Of a stretch of 64,000 bases of DNA, positions 5,453 to 17,987 are shown in pieces (position 1 is the stretch's first letter; each line of letters starts with the position of its first letter). The notes beneath the pieces were generated by a model that was given only the letters and a program-made list of their open reading frames with translations, was not told the origin of the DNA and did no database searches. Source of the DNA: Botryllus schlosseri (taxonomy: Eukaryota); assembly GCA_051294905.1 (NCBI GenBank), contig CM119376.1, forward strand, positions 27,342,001 to 27,406,000, read 5' to 3'. The position numbers and the translations under genes are program-made.

Positions 5453-8069
5453 CTAAGTCTGCCCGGCGTTGTCGGTGCTGTATGTTGTGCATTGACCTCC
5501 GTCCGTTTCTTCGACGCACGTCAATTGTGGCGGATTGTAAACGTAGGCAGTCGTACGTCCCGGGGCGTTCACGCATTTAGCTTCCTCAACGACTCCTGCA
5601 GTTTAAAAATAGCACAGAAGAAATTCGAGAGAGTAGGTTCTGCGTCATTTACCAGCGACACATTTGTAGTACGTTCCGTCGGCGCAGTCCTCTGCTTTAG
5701 TAAAGCTCACTCCGTCGAGTGGTTCGCCGCTTGGATCTGTGCAGTCCATAACATCGGTCTGCAATGGAAATATCCATGAAATATGACTCTGCGATTTACA
5801 TTTTACAACAGTCGTCAAAGACAAGCAAATCGAGTACAACCATAAAGCTCAGAGAATTATCAAGAAGGCACCAATGATCATCATACATGAATAATGAATA
5901 TACTATACTGGCTGACTAAAATCAATATAGGTCTCCCAATGTCGCATGATAAGTCTTTAAAACTTTTAGTTAGGATATTTATAATTGCGATATTTCGAAA
6001 CCTTGAGAGGCTCGCTCGCAATATCAACTAAGCGAAGTTCAGGCGGACATATTTACGACTCATTCCTAACTTCCTTGACAGTATTTATGGGACCTCGCCA
6101 GCTGCCTGCAGTGTTGATAGTTACCGTTAAACAAGCGTCGACGTTGCTGTACCAGTCGCACAGCGTTGTTTCAGGATTATAGACAGTTCCTGGTGCGCAG
6201 TCCCTTTTAATCCCTTCGCCTGTAATGTTGAATATGGATATCGGTGACAACTTTATAATAGATGTATTTTTGATTAAGTGCTTACCATGCACATACTGAC
6301 AATATGTTGAATAACATCCAGGCCCAACAGGGTACCTCTCTCCTTCTGAAACCCCGTGTGCATTGCCGCAATCTGACCAGAAGAACAAAACTACATTTAC
6401 TAAATTTACTCATTACATTTACTTATTATTGAATTTGTTGGTCTACGGTAACATAGACGGTATCATAGGCGACCTTTTTTAGTCAACACAGAATTTTTGA
6501 AAAGTGTCCTCTTTTTACTGATCTCAAAATATGATAACCCTACGGTAACAGTTCCAGAGCTTGCAATCAATTATGATATTTGCCATCGTCTTGAAAATAC
6601 CAGCGCATAGCCAGTAGGACGGAGCGGATCGACAAATTCTTTGGTCCTACTCCGATCCTGTTTTTTCAAGTTATGGTCCGACTCATTTAGGACGGATTCT
6701 AGAAATGACCGTGATCCGGTCCGAAAAACCTCGATAATAATTTATCTATTCACAGGATGGTATTGAATATCGATTAAAACAGTGCAAATAGGAATTTAAA
6801 AGCTCAAAGATCAAACCCAACCTATAGCTGTATTAATTGTGCCAACTTGGACTTTGGATGTCGTTTATTCCCATGAACGTTTTAGTTTCACTAGTGATTC
6901 GAGGGTGAAAGAGGGTAAGGCTGCCGTATTCTTATAAAAAAGTACTGATCCGGCTCCGACCCAACTCCAGCCGTATTAGAAAAAGTACAGATCCGGCGCC
7001 GAACGGGCTCCGACCACAAATGATAAAATCCGACCGGATATCCAATCCGGCTCCGGTCCATGCTCCGCCCTAATAGCCAGATGGACATACGTTTGATTAA
7101 TGTGGTTACATGCTGCCAGTATCTTGCCATATATATCGATTAAATGTATACCTGACGGATATAAAGAACTCGTCGGTGAAGGCGTAGTTGTTGTTGTCGT
7201 GGTGCTTCTGGTAGTACTGGTCGTAGTGGCAGTGGTCGTTGTGCGTGGTTTGGTAGTTGTAGAAGGTTTACGGGTTGTAGTGGTAGTGGTGGTAGGAGTC
7301 GTCGTAGATTGTGTGGTAGTTGTCGTTGTCGGTTTTTCCGTTGTCGTCGTCGTTGTTGTTGTTGTTTTCATCGTTGTCGTTGCTAAAGTCGTAGTGGTTG
7401 GCTTGGTTGTAGTAGTCGCAATAGTCGTAATAGTAGGCGAAGCATCATCTCCAGGGTATCCACTGCTTGGACTCTTGCTGGACCCGCTCTTAGAACTACT
7501 AGGACTCTTACTTGATCCGTATTTCGAGCTTTTCGGACTCTTGCTTGATCCGTATTTAGAGCCCTTCGGACTCTTGCTTGATTTACTTTTCGGGCTGTCA
7601 GGACTTTTGGGAGATTCCGATTTCGAGCCTTTCGTCGTTCCAGTCCCGGGGGAACTGGGACTTTTTCTAGATTTTGAGTCATACCGACTGGAACCGTCTT
7701 TGGATCCGGATTTCGATTTACCGGTAGTCTTAGAAGATTCCGTATCGTAGCGGCCGGGACTTGACGCTGTTTCGTCCGGACTTTTCGAACTTTTAGGGCT
7801 TTTGGTCGACTTTTTCTTAGAACCGCTGCGACCCTTAGTTGACTCGGATCTTAAACTTTTCGATTCAGACCGAGACCGTTTAAGTCGATATAATTTGGGA
7901 CTACTGTCTAAGGCGTCCGCTTCATCGCACAGTTGTGATGTGCGATAAGCTTCGCTAACTGATTAGAACACAAGTATTAGTTAATGATGCCATGTATCAT
8001 GGAAGAATATGCTTTATTACCCATAGTCACGAAGACCAAAAACAGTATCATTGCAATTTGAAGTTTCAT
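5453..8069 (-). CDS. Secreted mucin-like chitin-binding protein (peritrophin/CBM14 x2), paralog 1, 428 aa
   Basis: Exons 8069-8021, 7958-7152, 6372-6286, 6219-6125, 5758-5653, 5595-5453; all GT-AG and phase-consistent (1287 nt). Signal peptide MKLQIAMILFLVFVTMVSEA; RLKR at 7887-7876; Ser/Lys-rich then Thr-rich region. Domain 1 is C-x17-C-x4-C-x11-C-x12-C-x8-C with VYNP..CDW; domain 2 is C-x18-C-x7-C-x9-C-x18-C-x8-C. Confidence 0.92.
6471..6542. mobile_element. Terminal fragment of the gaggac/gtcctc MITE family (cf. 14519, 52874)
   Basis: gaccttttttagtcaac...gaaaagtgtcctc...atatgataacccta matches the end of 14519-14834. Confidence 0.6.
6615..7072. mobile_element. Non-autonomous hAT-type MITE in intron 2 of gene 1
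   Basis: TIRs taggacggagc / gctccgcccta; perfect 8-bp TSD ATAGCCAG at 6607-6614 and 7073-7080; internal tccg/ctccg repeats. Confidence 0.9.
7461..7585 (-). repeat. Coding 30-nt tandem repeat (S-S-K-S-P-x-x-S-K-x-G-like, 4 units) in gene 1
   Basis: ggactctt(g/a)ct recurs at 30-nt spacing; translation SSKSPKGSKYGSSKSPKSSKYGSSKSPSSSKSGSSKSPSSG. Confidence 0.85.
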
Positions 8070-9015
8070 CTTGTGCAACTTGGTCGTCCCGATGCCTCCA
8101 GAAAAAATAATCACTTACAACTGCTATTATTACTTTATATTATAATCAATCTATTCAATTCAAGTTTGCAGCAAACAATAGCAACTTTTGAAATTTAACC
8201 GACACTATATAAAATTACCCTAAATATATTCAATTTCACTCTAAACTGACCATAACGTGTACTTACTCCTTGCCAACTGAGACGTTAAATGCCATACGAG
8301 CGAAGTTGCATCAGTAACCTTGTGACTGTTAAACAGTGAGATTTTCTTGGTACATATTTGCTTTGATGGAATTTATTACCAATTGAAGACCGACTGTTGA
8401 TCAAGATGTTTGAAGCTCATATGTGTTGTTGGGAGTGGCTCCGTGACAAAATTGAGCAATGGATTTACAGCGTAGTTATAAAATCCATAATGTGCTATTT
8501 ACTATAATATATCGCGGGTTAGCGAAGGAACTGCAATATTGCTTATAATTTCATGCCTAAGAGAAGAACCATATATTCGCGAATACTTGACATGTGTGAT
8601 CTATAAAGATTATATGCGTTGTAATGAGTTGCATTGGCCTAATTTTTAACTCAGGCGTACTCGGCCTTCTTCATACCGTGTCCCTCTTTGAAAGTTTTGA
8701 AAAAAGCAATGCCCCCCTATATTTTAAAATTGAGAAACGTTTGTAATGTACAAAACTGGTTTATACATTACCCGGTACATAGAATGATAAAATAATATAA
8801 ATCCAACACGCAATAAAGATGATAGTGCAATAATCAGTTAATACATTTTCAGTTGGTGCGATGGTGGTGTGAAGAGTAAGTCGCATGTCATATTGAATAT
8901 CCAATAAGACACTGCGTCGCTTTGTCTTCGGAAGTATAACATTGTTGAAAACTCACATAACAATATTTCCTGACAAAGTTAACAGCATTGGTATGAAAAT
9001 TCCATTAACCTAGGA

Positions 9016-9090
9016 CAGTGGTTTTCAACTTTTTTGTCGTCGCGCACCCGTTTTAGACCGCCACGGGCCCCGCAATTTCCCTTAGCTTTT
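9016..9090. mobile_element. Solo left end of a Charlie-like hAT MITE
   Basis: Starts cagtggttttcaactttttt, like the termini at 46962/48108 and 40843; no matching right end found. Confidence 0.5.
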
Positions 9091-9357
9091 AGTTCAAATT
9101 TCGATCAATTATCGTGCAACCGTCATCTGTCTTATGCAAATATTAACGGCATAGGCTAGTGATAAACCGCAAGAGGATGACGTTTTTGTAAATAACATCT
9201 TACGCCATGTAGAAATTGGACACGATTTTATTATTTCGAAGCGAATTCTGCAACTGCATTTCTTGAAATATGTTGTAGTGCCTTGTAAATCCGCGCCTTC
9301 GATTTGATATGAACGAGTGCCGAAAATCCATTTCCACAAAGATAGGTGGAGGCGATT

Positions 9358-10346
9358 TAGGGATGGTGTGAACCTCTGAAAGGTTCAAGTTCGTGTGAAC
9401 GCAAACCTTTTTGAAAGGTTCTGTGTGAACGCGTACGTGAACCTCATGACGTCATGTGACGTCATATTGCTAATTTCAACCCTATATTTCAATGACGTGA
9501 TAGCCTATATTAATGTTCACGATACCTAGCGACGACTCGGGCCACATAATGCCACAATGCTGAAGTACATATTGATGATTTAAAAGTCGCTAAATGTATC
9601 AACTGATGCAATCAAATGATATAATAATCCCATAAAATCAATATCTTCCGTCGCATTGCCAACAATTTCGACGAGGACTTGACAGCGAATATAAGCTTAT
9701 GCCTTAACGGTCTAGGCCATACCGGACAATGTATTCGGCGTCTGAGTGTTGCTACATGGATATTGAGCAGAGTGTAAAACGGGTTTCTATACTTGCTACC
9801 GATATTACCCCATTAACAAGTTATACAGCAGTAGCCAACACCCCAATAGCTCGGATTTTGTTTTTATGATACATTAAGATCTCCCTGTACAAGATTGACC
9901 CTGTACGCCTGCTAGATTTTTACATCAGAAAACGATATAAATCTCATTGATTGCATGGTTGAATGAGCATCATTCGCTGACTACATAGTGTATTTCGCTC
10001 TTGATGTTGTGTGATTGCGGGTCAAGCTCACAGCAGAGAGTCACTTAATATTCCCAAACGGAAAGCCAGATATTTCGAGAAAGCTTTTCTAACAAATCAA
10101 GTAACATTTTTGAGATTGTCAAGGTGCATGCTCGTTTAGTGTTGATTGTTCATGCTGCCAGCGCCATGCCGCAGTTGAAATGCAATAAATTTGAACCAAA
10201 TATGTTATAATGAAGTGAAAATTGTAATGTATGAAAAAGGTTCACAGTGCAGAACCTACCTAGGTTCTGTTGTGAACGCGAACCTCAAAATTTCCGAGGT
10301 TCACACACAGAACGCGAACGTGAACCTCACCTTCACACCATACCTA
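9358..10346. mobile_element. Non-autonomous hAT-type MITE between the two mucin paralogs
   Basis: TIRs tagggatggtgtgaa / ttcacaccataccta; TSD AGGCGATT vs AGGCGAAT (7/8); gaac-rich subterminal repeats at both ends. Confidence 0.85.
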
Positions 10347-11592
10347 AGGCGAATGTAATAATAACGGGTAACTGTTCCGACGACATCTTTGGGTATGATC
10401 GCAACAGATATGACACACAAAAAAGAAACAGATTTTTTAAATGAATATATCACGTCCAGCCTAGTCATTTCCATCCAGCAGCTCATCTTGAAGTTATTCT
10501 GGAATAATGGATTTTATGTATGGATCTCGTGGCGCGGTTTCAATTGCTTTATCGGAACAGATTAGATAAAAACTTCGGAAACTATCAATCCAAACGATTG
10601 TCAATTAATTTGTCGAGACTGACTACTTCAAATCCTAAATAAAAAGTAGTAAGTAGTAAGGTCAATCAGGGTGAATTCGAAATGTTTTTTTTACCATATA
10701 TACCCAATGGCTTCAAATTCGATATTGGTTCGCTCGTTACCAATTCGTCTGCCATCCATCAAGTTTAGTGGAGCATAGAAGGTTCTCCTTCAAATGAATC
10801 GAATAAACTCTAAGTTAGTGCCACTGACAATCTGATGGTGCATCAATATTTGAGAACTATATTCAACGCCGTGCATGTCGTGCACTATACAAGTCAGTAA
10901 CCAATTATACTGCAAGCTCGCAAGTGTCGTTGCACGGCACTTCAAGAACACGAGAAGAATCAATACACGAATGAATACGACAAGAATGAATACACAAAAT
11001 TGATTAGAAATTGGAAAGCGCGCATACAATCACTAATTGCCCTCTTATATTCAACACCAGGGCAGGGTTCGGACACCGCATTGACTAGCTCGCATCGCGG
11101 CAATTGTATGCTACATACAGACTATAATAGCGATATGGGCTGCTTCGGTGCATTTCCCTATATTTACGTTCGCAAATCGTTACTGGAGTAAACGATCGTG
11201 CGCTTGAATGAATTTCAATTCATAGGCAAAAACGTAAGCCCCGATAACACACTATCCAATTTGGCGCTACGATTAGAAGCTATCGACGAAGAACGTGCAC
11301 TTGCTCGTCCAATTCAGAAAGGAGACAATGCTTCTCGGCGTGCGACATGAGTAAACAATAAACCTGTGTGGACATGTGCGGCAAGGTCATGGTTATATCC
11401 TATGGCGTCGCTTTTATATTCGTCTCATTACCAATTAGGTATATTGCTCATCTCACAGAAGCATCAATCCCGTTTTGTGACATGCATGGTTTTCATTATT
11501 TTTCGAACCACACAATTAGCCATTACGATCTACGAATTTGAGGGTATAGGTATGCCCGTAATACAGTATTTACGGAGTGCTACTGTTCATAC

Positions 11593-11716
11593 AACCAGCT
11601 CCAGTTCCGACTCCGGTTCCTCTTGAATTTTATGTAGAGATCCGGCTCCAGCTCCGCTGAAAATCCACGGCTCCGGAGCTCTGGCTCCTTGCTCCAGCTC
11701 CGGCTCCAAAGCCCTG
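11593..11716. mobile_element. MITE right-end fragment with (g)ctcc(g/a) repeats
   Basis: Arrays of ggctcc/agctcc ending in aaagccctg; flanks gttcatac / gttcttac could be a degraded TSD; left TIR absent. Confidence 0.55.
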
Positions 11717-11985
11717 GTTCTTACGACGACAAAAAAGCCCAGAAAAAGACCCGATGAGAGAACGCACTCACAAGGAATGAAGCGAGAAGAAAAGAGCCGC
11801 GAAATAGAGATTAACGTCGAAAAAGAACTGTGACATCGGGTACTATAGGTCGAGTTGGATGCCAGTTTAAGAGACTTGTCGTTCGGCATCCTGATATCTG
11901 TTCACTACATCGCATTGTGTGTCTTGTTCAGATGGAAATATAATCTGACGATTATCAAGATACATTGCTATCAAAAGGTGTGTAT

Positions 11986-11991
11986 TTTATT
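11986..11991 (-). terminator. Candidate polyadenylation signal of gene 2
   Basis: AATAAA on the minus strand about 170 nt downstream of the TGA at 12159. Confidence 0.4.
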
Positions 11992-12158
11992 CATCTGTTT
12001 TGATTATGAATTATACATACATCATAAGGCAACATTTATATTACATGTTTGAATCATTACAGTATCGGATTATGAGATTAATTTGCTGAATGTATAACGC
12101 GAAACCGCAGAATGCTACAAATTCAATTTTGCATTGTCGATCACAGCGCAGTGCTCGT

Positions 12159-15100
12159 TCATCTTTTCTTCAAAGGGCGCCGCACTTTTTTATTATTTTT
12201 CAATGCTCTCTTCTTTCTCTTGCTTGCTAAAATGGAATCATTCAAATTTCTAGAAGATATGAATGAGTCACAAAAATATTGATTTAATTACTTTCGCATA
12301 TAGCTACGAAATCATGTCACAGGTAGTGGAATAAAAGCTCTTTTTTTCAATTGCGGGCTAGGTTCATTTATACTTACTAGCTTTGTCAGTACTGAAGGCT
12401 TTGCATTCATCACCGTCGTTAACGATCACGCACATTCCCATCCACGGATTATAAACATACAATACGGGAAGGCCTGGCGGGGTCATGCACATGACTCGCT
12501 GAGCAACTCCTGATATTAAAAAATTAAGTACCAATGAGTACGTGGTGCGTCTCCGAGTAAGCCTTACGTTACCTTCCCAACATCTATAATAGGTCCCATC
12601 TGAGCAATCCTCGGACTTGGTAAAATCTACCCCAGTGAGTGGCTCTCCACTAGGATCAGTGCAACTCATTACATTCGGCTGGAACGAAGAGTAAAAAGAA
12701 GTAAATCAGGCTTATTAACTTGCGAACCTGAATGATCAATTTCATGTCAATAAAAACTTCATCAGAACAACGTCACATTGTTATTGTGAAATATCATGTA
12801 TCTGAAACGCATATAAAAGCTTGCAGGGGCACAGGTAAAAGGTAATGAAGTTGCAGCTAACAACTTGACTAAATACATAGAGTCTTTGTTCTGTTGTTGC
12901 ATTCATGGTGTGTTTCGATTACAATGGTCATTTTGGTCATAAGTTTTTGTTACCGTCAGAAACACTGCCGTTACGCCTGAGAAATTTTTTCGTAGGAAGC
13001 TATAGGTCCTAAAATGAGATATAAGGACCAATATTACATATGTTAAAAGCAATATGCATGTATACTAGGGCTGTTGAAAAAAAAAACATTTTTCCAAGTC
13101 TTGGCTGCTAGGAGATTAAATCGGCAGGTTGCCTAAAATACGATGCACACCAAATTTGAATCCATTCCAACCGGTAATCGCGCATTTCTAACATTTATCT
13201 TTTTTTTATATATTAAAAAAAAATTCAAATTTACCGGCTATCCCATGAAATTGATACGTTGTCTACAAAAACGACGCAAATCAAATTTGACTCAATTCCA
13301 ACTCGTAGAAACGGAGTTATTCAAGTTTTGCGTTGATAATTCTGAAATCACCAACCGTTTTAAGAGGATTTGTCCTCTTGTTTGACTTGTTTGAAAGTGT
13401 CCTCGGAGGACGCCTAAATTATCTATTTTTTGAGAATTCGTCCTCTTTTTTGAAAATATTGGTGAAATGTACGTGAGAATTCAACTGAGATATAGGAAAT
13501 CAGCACTCAAGTAAGGGTCCGGCGGGTCATTGGGGTGTTGAGGCAGAAAGTGAACCTTTTTTTAGTCAACCAACTATAAACTCGAACTAAATTTACCAAT
13601 TTTTCCGGATTTTTGTCTGGTAATGTAAGTCTGAAAATTTTGAAAATGTGTCCTCTTTTCAGATTTCCCAAATCTCGAGTGCAGTACCCCTTTAATTACT
13701 GACCACCAATTTCGACGATAGGGGTAATAGATGCTTCCTCCCCCTTCAATGGGATGTTTTCGGACCCGGATTTTATCATTAAAGACGCCAACAGGACCTC
13801 GATTGGATCAGAATCCCGGATCCCGAAATCCATACATCTCTAGCAGGCGTATATGGTGTCGGCATTAAACAGACGACGTAATAACAAATGAAAAGAAGTT
13901 GGTACCGGTACCGCTAGGAAGGTTCACCAAGAACTACACCCAGGTGATCGTTGTCTGTTCAGCGCTGGGACTGTATGCCAGTACGTACACCGCAACGTGC
14001 CCGTCGTTGTTCGTAAGACACAGTTCCTTCATAATATCGGCTATCGGCTATCTAAAACCCCTTCTCTACTTTAATCGCGTCTAGGAAGTGAAACAGTGAT
14101 GAAATGACCTTCATCTTTAACTCGAGACCAGCGCAGTGTGCCTTTAACAACGACCAAGGGCAATATACATACCGACTTGTTTAAATTACCTGCGTGCAAG
14201 CATCCACATTGTAATACCAATCGCAATGTCCATTTCCAATTGGATTGTATACTGCTCCTCTAGCACAATCCATTACGTACCCAATACCTTATTAAAATGA
14301 TAGACGTTGTAAGTTCGCATAGCCTCAACTTGAAAACTCGCAATCTGAATTCGGGGTCAAACTTTAATATTGAATCGGAAAACAGTTATTCCTCATTTAG
14401 ACATCCCAAGGAGATTTCAAATGTCGCTATATTTATGTGAGGGGCCATTACGAGACAGAGGTAAGAAGTAACCTGTATTGATTTATTTGGGTTATATCTG
14501 CGACATGTAGACATAGGTTAGGGTTACCATACGTCTCCTTTAGGAGGATTTGTCCTCCGTTTTCAGGTTTTTGAAAATGTCCTCCGAGGACGCCCAAAGG
14601 GCCTCCTTTTTGGAGATTCGTCCTCCTCTACAGCTTTTGGAGCTAAGAAATGGGCATAAATGACGCTAAATAGGAAATTCGTACGAAAGTGACGACCTTT
14701 TTTCAATCAACCAACCACAGAGTCGGGAAGTTAGGAAAAATTTACTATTTTATCCGAATTTTACTCAACAATTCTAAGTCTGAAAATTTTGAAAAAGTGT
14801 CCTCCTTTCCCGACCCCAAAATATGGTAACCCAAGAGGTGTCTGGATAAGGGTGTCCGGTCAATACCGAGAAAACCATTACCGAGAATGCCATTACCGAG
14901 AATGGACACCACCGAGAATGGACATTACCGAGAATGGACACCACCGAGAATGGACATAACCGAGAATGGACACCACCGAGAATGGACATTACCGAGAATG
15001 CAATATATGCAATGCAGGCATGTTATGCACATGAACTGGTCGTGTGTGAGCACCACGTCGTTGCCACATTCGGTATCAATGCTCAGGCATAAATTTATCA

Positions 15101-17987
15101 ACAACGTCAGTCCCAGTAAGCTATATTCTTGACATTGGCCATTCTCGGTAATGTCCATTCTCGGTGGTGTCAATTCTCGGTAATGACCATTCTCGGTAAT
15201 GTCCATACTTGGTAATGTCCATTCTCGGTAATGGCATTCTCGGTATTGTCCATTCTCGGTAATAGTTTTCTCGGTAATAGTATAGAACCCTGGATAAGAC
15301 TTTCAAGTATTAAGATAATCTTTTCAGCATTCAAAACTGGAAGAATTTATATCATGTTGCTTACCATTGACATGTCTGCAAAATCTCGAGTAGCATCCAG
15401 GACCAATCGGATAAAAATATCCATTGGGAAGTCCACTGACATCACTGCAATCTGAAAGTACAATAGCACCCACTAGCATCAACTGCACCGTGTATAAATT
15501 GTTGCTGGTAATTGATTGAAGTTTGACACCCGTGCTTATCTGATTATCGAATCTTCAGAAGCATACGAAAGCTTTTTTGTCAGTAGCTTACCTACGAAAG
15601 CTTTTTTTGTGAGTAGCTTACCTGCAGGCCTCTGTGTGGTCGAAGCCAGAGTGGTTTTGGTTGCTCCACTGTCCACATTATCGCCGTTTTCTGATTCAGG
15701 TGGGGGTTCAGTGGTAGCGGTGCTTTCAGTGGCTTCCGTGGTTGGCGGCATTGTCGTCTGGGTGGTAGTTTCTGGGCTACTGCTCGTGGTAGACGCTGTT
15801 GTAGTAGTGGACTTTGTCGTAGGAGCAGCTGGGGTGGTAGTAGATTTCGTTGTCGACTCAGTGGAGGACTGGGTGCTTTGTGCTGTGGGAATCGCTTCGG
15901 TAGTTGTGGATATCGGCACGGGTTCGGTGGTTGTAGGCTCGGTAGTAGATTGAGTACTTAGCGTAGTTGAGGATTCAGTTCCCACCGTTGTTGTGGAAAT
16001 AGATGGATTCGATTCGACATTGGACGTTGTTTTAGGCGATTCGCTGCTCGATAGTGGATCGGTTTCTACTTCGAGGTTCTCTGTTGTACTTGAAGTTCCT
16101 TCAGTGGTTGTAGATATCGATGATTCAGTTGTAGATAAAGTAACCGTTTCAGTGGTAGTAGTAGATTGTGGTACAGTTTTGTCAGTTATCAGAATAGTTG
16201 TGGAGGATACAGTGCTCTTGCTGGTTTCCGGCGTAGGCTCAGTAGTCGACTTGCTTGTGGAAATTGCTTCGCTTGTGGTGGTTGATTCTAGTGTTGGTTC
16301 AGTGTCCGGCTCGGCGCCTAGAGTAGATGAAACAACTCCGCCGGTACTGGTAGTTGTAGATGCACCTGGTGTCTCAGATGCCTCAATCTCGGGATCGGCG
16401 GTGCTGCTGGTTAATACTATCTCTGCTGTGGAAGACTTCTGCGTTTCAGTACTGGAGATCGTGCTCGTGGATACCGTTGTTGTCTTCGTCGATGTGGTAC
16501 CGGTGTTTTCCGTCTCTGATTCAACCGGCGGTTGGGTACTAGTGTGGACGGTTTCGGGCTGAGTCGTCGTAGTCGGCTCAGTTGTGGTCGGAGTTGTCGT
16601 TGTGGTAGTTGGAGCTGGTGTGGTAGTTGTAGTTGTGGTTGGTGTAGTTGTTGTGGTCGTTGGAGCTGGTGTGGTCGTTGTAGTTGTAGTTGGAGTAGTC
16701 GATGTGGTCGTTGGAGCTGGTGTGGTCGTTGTTGTAGTTGTAGTTGAAGTAGTCGTTGTGGTCGTTGGAGCCGGTGTGGTCGTTGTAGTTGTAGTGGGAG
16801 TAATCGTTGTGGTCGTCGGAGCCGGTGTGGTCGTTGTAGTTGTAGATGCACCTGGTGTCTCAGATGCCTCAATCTCGGGATCGGCGGTGCTGCTGGTTAA
16901 TACTATCTCTGCTGTGGAAGACTTCTGCGTTTCAGTACTGGAGATCGTGCTCGTGGATACCGTTGTTTTCTTCGTCGATGTGGTACCGGTGTTTTCCGTC
17001 TCTGATTCAACCGGCGGTTGAGTACTAGTGTGGACGGTTTCGGGCTGAGTCGTCGTAGTCGGCTCAGTTGTGGTTGGAGTTGTCGTTGTGGTAGTTGGAG
17101 TTGGTGTGGTAGTTGTAGTTGTGGTTGGTGTAGTTGTTGTGGTCGTTGGAGCTGGTGTGGTCGTTGTAGTTGTAGTGGGAGTAGTTGTTGTCGTCGTTGT
17201 AGTCGGTGTGGTTGTTGTAGTCGTTGTGGTTGGAGTAGTCGTTGTGGTGGTTGTAGGAGTCGTCGTTGTTGTGGTTGTTGTGGTAGTTGTAGTAGTTTTC
17301 GGCTGTTGTTGTGGGGTTCCACTACTACTACTACTACTACTACTGCTGCTGCTACTGCTACTGGAGCTGCCCGAACTGGATCTTTTGAATCGTTTAAACT
17401 GCGGACTTTGGGGAGATTTTTCACTTTCTTCCACAGAAGGCGCCCGGAACGCATCGGCCACTATAGTGATAAAATGGAATCAAATTCGCTGAAGTCCATT
17501 TTTAAGGTCATGGTGAAATCAATTTTTGTAAGATTTTCATTTTCTGTCGGTCATATCTTGGCCATGTTTATGTATATCGCAATATTACAAACTTGATTAT
17601 CCCAAGATGTTGAAAATGGACATAAGGCTATACTCTGATTCCACAACGACGATATAATCCGCGTTGAAAATATGTTACTCAGAAATTCTAATTGAAGTTA
17701 CTCTTCCCGACTCTCTCGCCCTCTCCTCACATTAACTTTTGACTGGACAGAACACGCACACACACGTTAAACATACATACATACCCAAGCTATTTTGAAA
17801 ATATTTCAATACCCAATTATGCTGTTATATGTCAGATTAGTTCATACAAATCGAAATAGGGTTAGTGGGCAAATATTCAGACTGATACAGACAGCAGCAT
17901 ATGTTGAGATACAATAAAAGAGTAACTATGTACTTTACCTACGCCGAGAACCAGCACAGCTACTAGAAATGTAGCTAAAATCTTCAT
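12159..17987 (-). CDS. Secreted mucin-like chitin-binding protein (peritrophin/CBM14 x2), paralog 2, 792 aa
   Basis: Exons 17987-17939, 17460-15622, 15451-15365, 14287-14190, 12678-12573, 12509-12378, 12226-12159; GT-AG and phase-consistent (2379 nt). Exons 1, 3 and 5 have the same lengths as in paralog 1 (49, 87, 106). Signal peptide MKILATFLVAVLVLGVVADA; RFKR at 17392-17381; poly-Ser; ~600-aa Thr/Ser/Pro/Glu mucin region; two Cys6 domains; basic tail TSKRKKRALKNNKKVRRPLKKR. The last exon is less certain; without it the stop is at 12364. Confidence 0.92.
13358..13673. mobile_element. TIR-less copy of the gtcctc/gaggac MITE family in intron 4 of gene 2
   Basis: gaggatttgtcctc...gaaagtgtcctcggaggacgcc...ttcgtcctc aligns with 14535-14630 and the reverse complement of 53220-53320. 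Confidence 0.7.
14519..14834. mobile_element. hAT-type MITE (tagggttaccata family) in intron 3 of gene 2
   Basis: TIRs tagggttaccata / tatggtaaccc(a)a; homologous to 52874-53332; TSD not recognisable. Confidence 0.8.
14851..15289. mobile_element. MULE-like foldback MITE whose arms are inverted arrays of a 16-nt unit (ACCGAGAATGGACATT)
   Basis: About 9 tandem units on the left, inverted array on the right, and a ~135-nt unique spacer; 9-bp direct repeat CTGGATAAG at 14842-14850 and 15290-15298. Confidence 0.85.
15564..15622 (-). repeat. Tandem 29/30-nt duplication that duplicates the 5' splice site of gene 2 intron 2
   Basis: tacgaaagc(t)6-7gt(c/g)agtagcttacc occurs twice; minus-strand AG|gtaagc donors at 15621 and 15591. 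Confidence 0.9.
16350..17185 (-). repeat. Recent 486-nt-period internal duplication in the mucin exon of gene 2
   Basis: 16350-16699 and 16836-17185 are nearly identical (EPTTTTQPETVHTSTQPPVESETEN...ETPGAST twice), separated by PAPT-rich short repeats. Confidence 0.95.

Follow-up and report, generated by a model that had tools for sequence, protein, structure and literature searches.

A tandem pair of putative chitin-binding mucin genes with an N-terminal convertase motif in the ascidian Botryllus schlosseri

Two intact six-exon genes, here called A and B, lie head-to-tail on the minus strand of a 64,000-nucleotide (nt) stretch of the Botryllus schlosseri genome (NCBI GenBank assembly GCA_051294905.1, contig CM119376.1, positions 27,342,001 to 27,406,000 of the forward strand; hereafter the window, with positions counted from its first letter). 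The two genes share their domain order and nearly all of their exon structure, both end in a pair of six-cysteine modules with CBM14 homology and fold, and an RxKR motif is kept near the N terminus of both paralogs. With modest confidence, we interpret A and B as secreted mucins of the peritrophin or invertebrate-intestinal-mucin type that would be chitin-anchored, O-glycosylated, convertase-matured and non-gel-forming, and that would most likely act in the chitin-framed mucus barrier of the gut. The CBM14-mucin protein type is known; what is new is an unannotated chordate example with an unusual N-terminal convertase motif.

Structure and age of the gene pair

Gene models were rebuilt from the raw minus-strand sequence, with exons joined at GT..AG sites (Table 1). 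All ten introns are GT-AG, both coding sequences are multiples of three that contain no internal stops, and each start ATG is preceded by an in-frame stop with no other in-frame ATG between. With the A stop codon at one end and the B ATG at the other, the pair covers exactly the interval (5453-17987) that a first-pass annotation of the sequence had described as a tandem pair. The intron phases that it had called identical are 1,1,1,0,1 in both rebuilt models, and its exon sizes proved exact, with conserved exons of 49, 87 and 106 nt and a low-complexity exon that differs in length (807 versus 1839 nt).

The C-terminal regions of the two proteins, each comprising two six-Cys domains, are 54% identical, and all 24 domain cysteines are kept; identity over residues 1-46 is 27%. 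Nonsynonymous divergence (dN) between A and B is 0.36 and synonymous divergence (dS) is saturated. Because of the C-terminal identity, the dN value and the saturated dS, A and B are, as judged from divergence, an old tandem duplicate pair of which both copies were retained. In each of the four CBM14 modules a phase-1 intron interrupts the Gly codon next to Cys3 on its C-terminal side (junctions 6286/6219 and 5653/5595 in A, 15365/14287 and 12573/12509 in B), and this shared position suggests that the modules derive from an ancestral two-exon module that duplicated.

Table 1. Genes A and B and their exons in the window.
Feature	Position	Strand	Size	Content
Gene A	5453..8069	-	spliced coding sequence 1287 nt	complete 6-exon gene, 428-aa pre-pro CBM14 mucin (predicted)
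A exon 1	8069-8021	-	49 nt	start codon and most of signal peptide; hydrophobic core Kyte-Doolittle 2.67
A exon 2	7958-7152	-	807 nt	signal-peptide end, pro-segment, RLKR, S/K-rich block, Thr tract
A exons 3 and 4	6372-6286, 6219-6125	-	87 + 95 nt	first CBM14 domain, Pfam 31.3 bits; intron 6220-6285
A exons 5 and 6	5758-5653, 5595-5453	-	106 + 143 nt	second, divergent CBM14 domain, short tail, stop; intron 5596-5652
Gene B	12364..17987	-	spliced coding sequence 2325 nt	complete 6-exon gene, 774-aa pre-pro CBM14 mucin (predicted)
B exon 1	17987-17939	-	49 nt	start codon and most of signal peptide; hydrophobic core Kyte-Doolittle 3.07
B exon 2	17460-15622	-	1839 nt	pro-segment, RFKR, poly-Ser, acidic Pro/Thr/Ser tract
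B exons 3 and 4	15451-15365, 14287-14190	-	87 + 98 nt	first CBM14 domain, Pfam 26.3 bits; intron 14288-15364
B exons 5 and 6	12678-12573, 12509-12364	-	106 + 146 nt	second, divergent CBM14 domain, stop; intron 12510-12572

Signal peptide, serine block and mucin tract

From the N terminus, both proteins run through a signal peptide, a pro-segment of about 23 amino acids (aa), RxKR, a Ser-rich block, a Thr-rich tract and two six-Cys domains. The signal peptide, RxKR, Ser-rich block and O-glycosylatable Thr tract that the first-pass annotation had listed for both genes are all present in the rebuilt proteins. Signal peptides were judged heuristically from Lys2, hydrophobicity and the residues at -3/-1. 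Lys occupies position 2 in both proteins, the hydrophobic core (residues 3-17) is 14-15 residues long with a mean Kyte-Doolittle value of 2.7 in A and 3.1 in B, and small residues stand at -3/-1 (SEA/Y in A, ADA/F in B).

The low-complexity regions differ in length and composition. In A, a Ser-rich block of 144 aa (residues 45-188; S 38%, K 19%, isoelectric point [pI] 10.2) contains KSPKSSKYGSS repeats, with 33-nt and 21-nt internal repeats in exon 2, and is followed by a Thr tract of 97 aa (residues 189-285; 61% T, pI 11.2). The Ser block of B is only 21 aa long (residues 44-64; 90% Ser) and is encoded by a plain (AGT)n microsatellite (window 17321-17362); the Pro/Thr/Ser (PTS) tract that follows spans 565 aa (residues 65-629; T 46%, S 13%, P 10%) and is acidic (pI 4.1). 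Within B exon 2, a 486-nt (162-aa) unit is repeated 1.9 times with 95% identity (window 16350-17253), a tandem duplication that is, by this identity, recent. Given this duplication and the microsatellite, the low-complexity parts appear to evolve by repeat slippage.

Cys is absent from residues 45-285 of A and 44-629 of B, such that both proteins have the long Cys-free PTS tract of a mucin-type peritrophin. Twelve of the 13 Cys in A, and all 12 in B, belong to the two CBM14 modules. As a separate observation, the stalks carry opposite charges, the S/K and Thr regions of A being basic and the PTS tract of B acidic; an electrostatic interaction between them would be speculative.

Two C-terminal CBM14-type modules

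The first-pass annotation had called both six-Cys domains CBM14-like and proposed HMMER against Pfam CBM_14 (PF01607; gathering cut-off 22.1 bits) as the check. For domain 1 the call held, as it scores above the cut-off in both genes (31.3 bits in A, 26.3 in B). Domain 2 has CBM_14 as its best match and falls below the cut-off (15.9 bits, E 0.014, in A; 15.2 bits, E 0.024, in B), yet it is homologous by profile comparison. In that comparison, a domain-2 profile made from A, B, related fragments and the relative P0040 matched a profile of 16 canonical CBM14 units with 95.8% probability and an E value of 8e-9 (hhalign). P0040 has the same two-module cassette, and Pfam counts both of its modules as CBM_14.

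The six Cys columns of both domains align with those of canonical repeats, Cys3 of domain 1 being shifted by two residues; successive Cys are spaced 17/4/11/12-13/8 in domain 1, and in domain 2 the series is 18/7/9/18/8. Domain 1 retains the canonical C-x-x-G-x-x-Y-N-P...C-D-W-Y pattern. In domain 2 the CDW motif is lost, and an insertion of 6 residues precedes YNP.

An AlphaFold2 model of the A C terminus (predicted local distance difference test [pLDDT] 74) has the same strand pattern in both domains. When this model was compared with the PDB using Foldseek, the top matches were exclusively CBM14 proteins, namely EHEP (the best, E 1.6e-4), Avr4, the CBM14 of chitotriosidase (CHIT1), tachycitin, Blo t 12 and Der p 23. 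VIA-align Z scores for domain 1 ranged from 8.2 to 6.1, with 8.2 for EHEP domain 1, 6.7 for the CHIT1 CBM14 and 6.2 for Avr4. Among Swiss-Prot AlphaFold models, nematode CPG-2 and CBD-1 and Drosophila Obstructor-E matched over residues 4-132, that is, over both modules (E 2e-7 to 7e-6); blowfly peritrophin-48 and -44 were also fold matches over these residues, the whole set spanning E 2e-7 to 8e-5. The modeled C terminus thus has the tachycitin/CBM14 fold. On profile scores and the model, domain 1 is a CBM14 member in both genes, and domain 2 is best described as a divergent CBM14 homolog that fails the curated threshold, because of the hhalign result and the fold matches that span both domains.

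Pro-segment and RxKR motif

The convertase motif is RLKR at residues 41-44 of A and RFKR at residues 40-43 of B, with Ser next in each; RxKR-S occupies an aligned position between signal peptide and low-complexity block. The pro-segments that end at RLKR/S and RFKR/S are 24 aa and 23 aa long, respectively, contain no recognizable domain, and have a pI of 8.2 in A and 10.3 in B, which contradicts the "acidic" in their earlier description as acidic/polar. Nor is the propeptide conserved as had been proposed: at 27% identity over residues 1-46, the RxKR-S core alone is kept between A and B.

Only four Arg occur in residues 21-629 of B, two of them in the RFKR motif, and RxKR was rare in shuffles of this protein: for residues 21-70 it arose with P = 0.009, and shuffling residues 21-629 never yielded it (P < 0.001). 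The basic composition of A residues 21-70 raises the chance to 0.135 in shuffles of that stretch. None of 63 relatives with a signal-peptide-like N terminus had RxKR at residues 18-80, and an N-terminal convertase motif is unusual among CBM14 relatives. A has a single unpaired Cys, residue 27, which falls within the predicted pro-segment, such that mature A would have 12 Cys. A chance origin of the motif seems unlikely, since it is aligned in two old paralogs and missing from the 63 signal-peptide-bearing relatives. The aligned RxKR-S within poorly matching sequence, the shuffles, the relatives and the unpaired Cys of A together indicate that RxKR is probably a functional dibasic processing site. 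The earlier term "furin-processed" is too strong: furin processing is a prediction from the motif, which both genes have.

Convertase-type sites were also seen in another setting. In the phmmer relative P0025 (residues 390-514), CBM14 units are separated by RAKR sites, and this protein could be a convertase-cut polyprotein of chitin-binding modules.

Relatives in sequence databases

An exhaustive phmmer search over 1.84 billion representatives returned 181 matches, which look like multi-CBM14 proteins. Among named sequences, those nearest to the CBM14 pair come from ascidians. The top match was a Styela clava protein (XP_077975042.1) with 17 CBM14 units, PTS linkers and a VWA_4 domain, and a Ciona cluster of a cbd-1-like/hemicentin-1-like VWA protein shares the two-module cassette. 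The only close relatives were C-terminal open reading frame (ORF) fragments, 51-97% identical per exon, from Logan sample SRR25569784 (P0038, P0091 and P0031, on contigs of 2-3.3 kb). A exon 2, searched whole and as residues 1-45 against a 5.8-billion-protein collection, returned nothing; the whole-exon search was swamped by low-complexity candidates and so says little. Literature searches on CBM14 or peritrophin in ascidians and on furin with peritrophin, in which few subscription journals were covered, returned no description of this architecture for tunicates.

Comparison with known systems

Insect intestinal mucin and the mucin-type peritrophins resemble A and B in having a signal peptide, a long Thr/Ser/Pro O-glycosylation tract and peritrophin-A (CBM14) modules, in lacking VWD and CK domains, and in the expansion of tandem repeats within the mucin exon. 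They differ from A and B in the placement of these modules, which in insect intestinal mucin flank the mucin tract and here form one C-terminal pair. A and B further differ in having an N-terminal RxKR pro-segment and a chordate host, and their gut location is predicted. The insect-intestinal-mucin-like architecture proposed by the first-pass annotation is a reasonable comparison as regards signal peptide, PTS tract and CBM14, and fails in that CBM14 lies on one side of the tract only.

Of the reviewed proteins, Caenorhabditis elegans CPG-1/CPG-2 and CBD-1 matched the fold of both domains best (E 2e-7 over query residues 4-132). They too carry CBM14 modules together with a glycosylated region rich in Ser and Thr, and the A model aligned to the C-terminal end of CPG-2 (residues 402-523 of 524). 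These proteins differ in sequence (about 20% identity) and belong to an eggshell matrix. A possible alternative that we considered is that A and B are chondroitin proteoglycans of the CPG type, in which chondroitin is carried on Ser-Gly sites; against this, A and B have only five SG dipeptides each.

The ascidian CBM14-PTS-VWA proteins (Styela clava XP_077975042.1 and the Ciona cluster), 31-38% identical to A, space their CBM14 units with PTS linkers, and the Ciona gut chitin-membrane proteome includes a protein of similar description that has three chitin-binding domains. They differ in their VWA_4 domains and many CBM14 repeats, and in lacking both a long single mucin tract and an early RxKR. 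Two components of the Ciona gut barrier, Ci-GFM1 and the VCBPs, are also secreted chordate barrier proteins with a CBM14 domain (PMC6109156). Ci-GFM1, however, is a 2880-aa polymer-forming mucin with VWD/C8/TIL/CK modules and a PTS region of only 50 aa, and Ig-V domains are found in the VCBPs; none of these modules is present in A or B. A gel-forming mucin of MUC2 or GFM1 type was rejected for A and B, as VWD and CK are absent, the part outside CBM14 is nearly Cys-free, and Pfam finds CBM_14 only, in the C termini. EHEP of Aplysia kurodai (PDB 8IN3/8IN6), the best solved-structure match, shares the tandem peritrophin-A domains. It differs in having three domains and no mucin tract, and it binds phlorotannin and not chitin (PMC10619976).

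Proposed maturation and site of action

From this anatomy we infer secretion, glycosylation, convertase cleavage, chitin binding and a gut location for A and B, as follows. The signal peptide would be removed at about residue 20, and the two C-terminal CBM14 modules would fold in the endoplasmic reticulum with three disulfides each. The Thr/Ser/Pro tract would then be densely O-glycosylated in the Golgi, and late in the secretory pathway a furin-type proprotein convertase would cut behind RLKR44 of A and RFKR43 of B, removing the pro-segment of about 23 aa. Outside the cell, the CBM14 pair would anchor the molecule to chitin nanofibrils, and the stalk with its glycans, some 240 aa long in A and some 590 aa in B, would project as a hydrated brush. 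Because the chitin-binding modules are C-terminal only, the architecture suggests a tethered glycan brush rather than a fibril cross-linker.

The likeliest site would be the chitin-framed mucus barrier of the gut. Ascidian guts make such a barrier (PMC6109156, PMC4757023), and the likeness to it drawn by the first-pass annotation is reasonable. The Ciona gut chitin-membrane proteome contains MACPF, VCBP-C, GFM1, chitinase, CLCA and a "hemicentin" with three chitin-binding domains; its authors described the tunicate gut membrane as resembling the insect peritrophic matrix in its chitin frame and mammalian mucus in its proteins, and contrasted it with insect matrices made of chitin-binding domain (CBD)/PTS proteins, since its components included no insect-type proteins of that kind (PMC6109156). 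Set against that contrast, A and B, as intact and long-retained CBD and PTS genes of insect-like type in an ascidian, are a concrete candidate. If they act in the gut barrier, the evolutionary link that joins peritrophic matrices to chordate mucus would extend from shared chitin to shared types of protein. If they act in another tissue, they would be an ordinary lineage-specific pair of secreted glycoproteins.

A bolder proposal, which we put forward tentatively and regard as doubtful, is that ascidians keep a second, "invertebrate-type" class of gut mucin that is anchored directly to chitin, beside the vertebrate-type gel-forming mucin, with A (pI 10-11) and B (pI 4.1) convertase-matured and co-assembling electrostatically on the chitin mesh. 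Were this true, the published contrast between insect CBD and PTS proteins and a tunicate barrier of MACPF, VCBP and GFM would be incomplete.

Several observations count against the interpretation of A and B as chitin-anchored gut mucins. Heavily glycosylated mucins are poorly detected by mass spectrometry, which makes absence from a Ciona proteome weak evidence. With that weight, no protein of the A/B type is in the published Ciona barrier-membrane proteome (PMC6109156). Neither A, B nor a full-length ortholog was present in the protein collections searched, and therefore the genes appear unannotated and, as no close Ciona ortholog was found either, restricted to the lineage. The conservation of RxKR was seen between two paralogs of one genome only. 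Besides its sub-threshold Pfam scores, domain 2 folded alone gave a pLDDT of 57 and non-significant Foldseek matches, though CBM14 proteins came first, and this model was not counted as evidence. Finally, the CBM14 fold can occur without chitin binding, as it does in EHEP and Der p 23 (PMC10619976).

Alternative explanations

Among the alternatives, the one that survives best keeps A and B as the same secreted CBM14 mucins and places them in another matrix, such as the tunic, the pharyngeal/endostyle mucus net, the egg coat or a larval adhesive; we rate this as less likely, though a real contender. The tunic is made of cellulose with possible chitin, and the nematode proteins CPG-1/2 and CBD-1 are a precedent for an egg coat. 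The best reviewed fold matches are those very eggshell proteins (CPG-2, CBD-1, CPG-1), nothing in the sequence specifies a tissue, an A/B-type protein is absent from the Ciona gut-membrane proteome, and the Lys/Ser/Tyr-rich block of A, with its KSPKSSKYGSS repeats, is similar in composition to cationic adhesive or matrix proteins. The gut, on the other hand, is the site of the chitin-containing matrix that the ascidian studies cited here document (PMC6109156, PMC4757023). The nearest ascidian relatives are moreover CBM14-PTS-VWA proteins, of which a similarly described one occurs in the Ciona gut proteome, and on these two points we prefer the gut barrier as the site of the predicted mucins.

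The CBM14-fold modules might instead bind no chitin but dietary polyphenols, other glycans or microbes, with A and B serving as soluble protective or scavenging mucins. We regard this as improbable, since the great majority of CBM14 proteins that have been characterized are chitin binders, chitin is produced in the gut of the host, and domain 1 keeps the canonical C-x-x-G-x-x-Y-N-P...C-D-W-Y residues. In its favor, chitin-contact residues are not conserved across CBM14, and neither EHEP nor Der p 23 binds chitin (PMC10619976). EHEP is also the top PDB match by both Foldseek and VIA-align, and domain 2 combines the loss of the CDW motif with its 6-residue insertion.

A slightly less probable alternative holds that the pro-segment keeps the mucin inert and that, as the first-pass annotation had suggested, proteolysis after secretion triggers matrix assembly by removing it. 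Cleavage-dependent polymerization of ZP-domain proteins offers a parallel, and the RxKR is kept in both paralogs and absent from relatives. The pro-segment, however, is short, has no recognizable domain and is poorly conserved save for the cleavage motif; ZP, VWD and CK modules are absent; and A 45-285 and B 44-629 are Cys-free. Furin-type convertases act mainly in the trans-Golgi, before secretion, and given this and the lack of a polymerization module the analysis lends no support to a post-secretion trigger; we prefer cleavage on the way out of the cell, as part of the maturation of a chitin-anchored mucin.

That the genes are unexpressed or decaying, or the models partly wrong and the motifs functionless, is highly improbable: a transcript or annotated protein for A or B is absent from the collections searched, but the 428- and 774-aa ORFs are complete, with six exons each and ten canonical introns, 24 of 24 domain cysteines were kept since a duplication so old that dS is saturated, and related exon fragments, 64-97% identical, occur in another sequencing sample.

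Other features of the window

The N- and C-termini of A and B, used as tblastn queries, revealed no third copy or stray CBM14 exons in the window. ORFs of at least 110 aa in 18000-64000 gave no Pfam match, and by this crude ORF/Pfam test that flank looks gene-poor.

Two features concern the introns of B. The exon 2 donor lies inside a 30-nt tandem duplication (window 15564-15623, minus strand), which places two GGTAAG donors 30 nt apart; if the distal donor were used, 10 in-frame residues would be added between the mucin tract and the first CBM14. Intron 3 contains a foldback (window 14858-15283) made of two opposed arrays of a 16-nt unit (ACCGAGAATGGACA...) that occurs nowhere else in the window, with arms of up to 124 nt and 85-92% complementarity.

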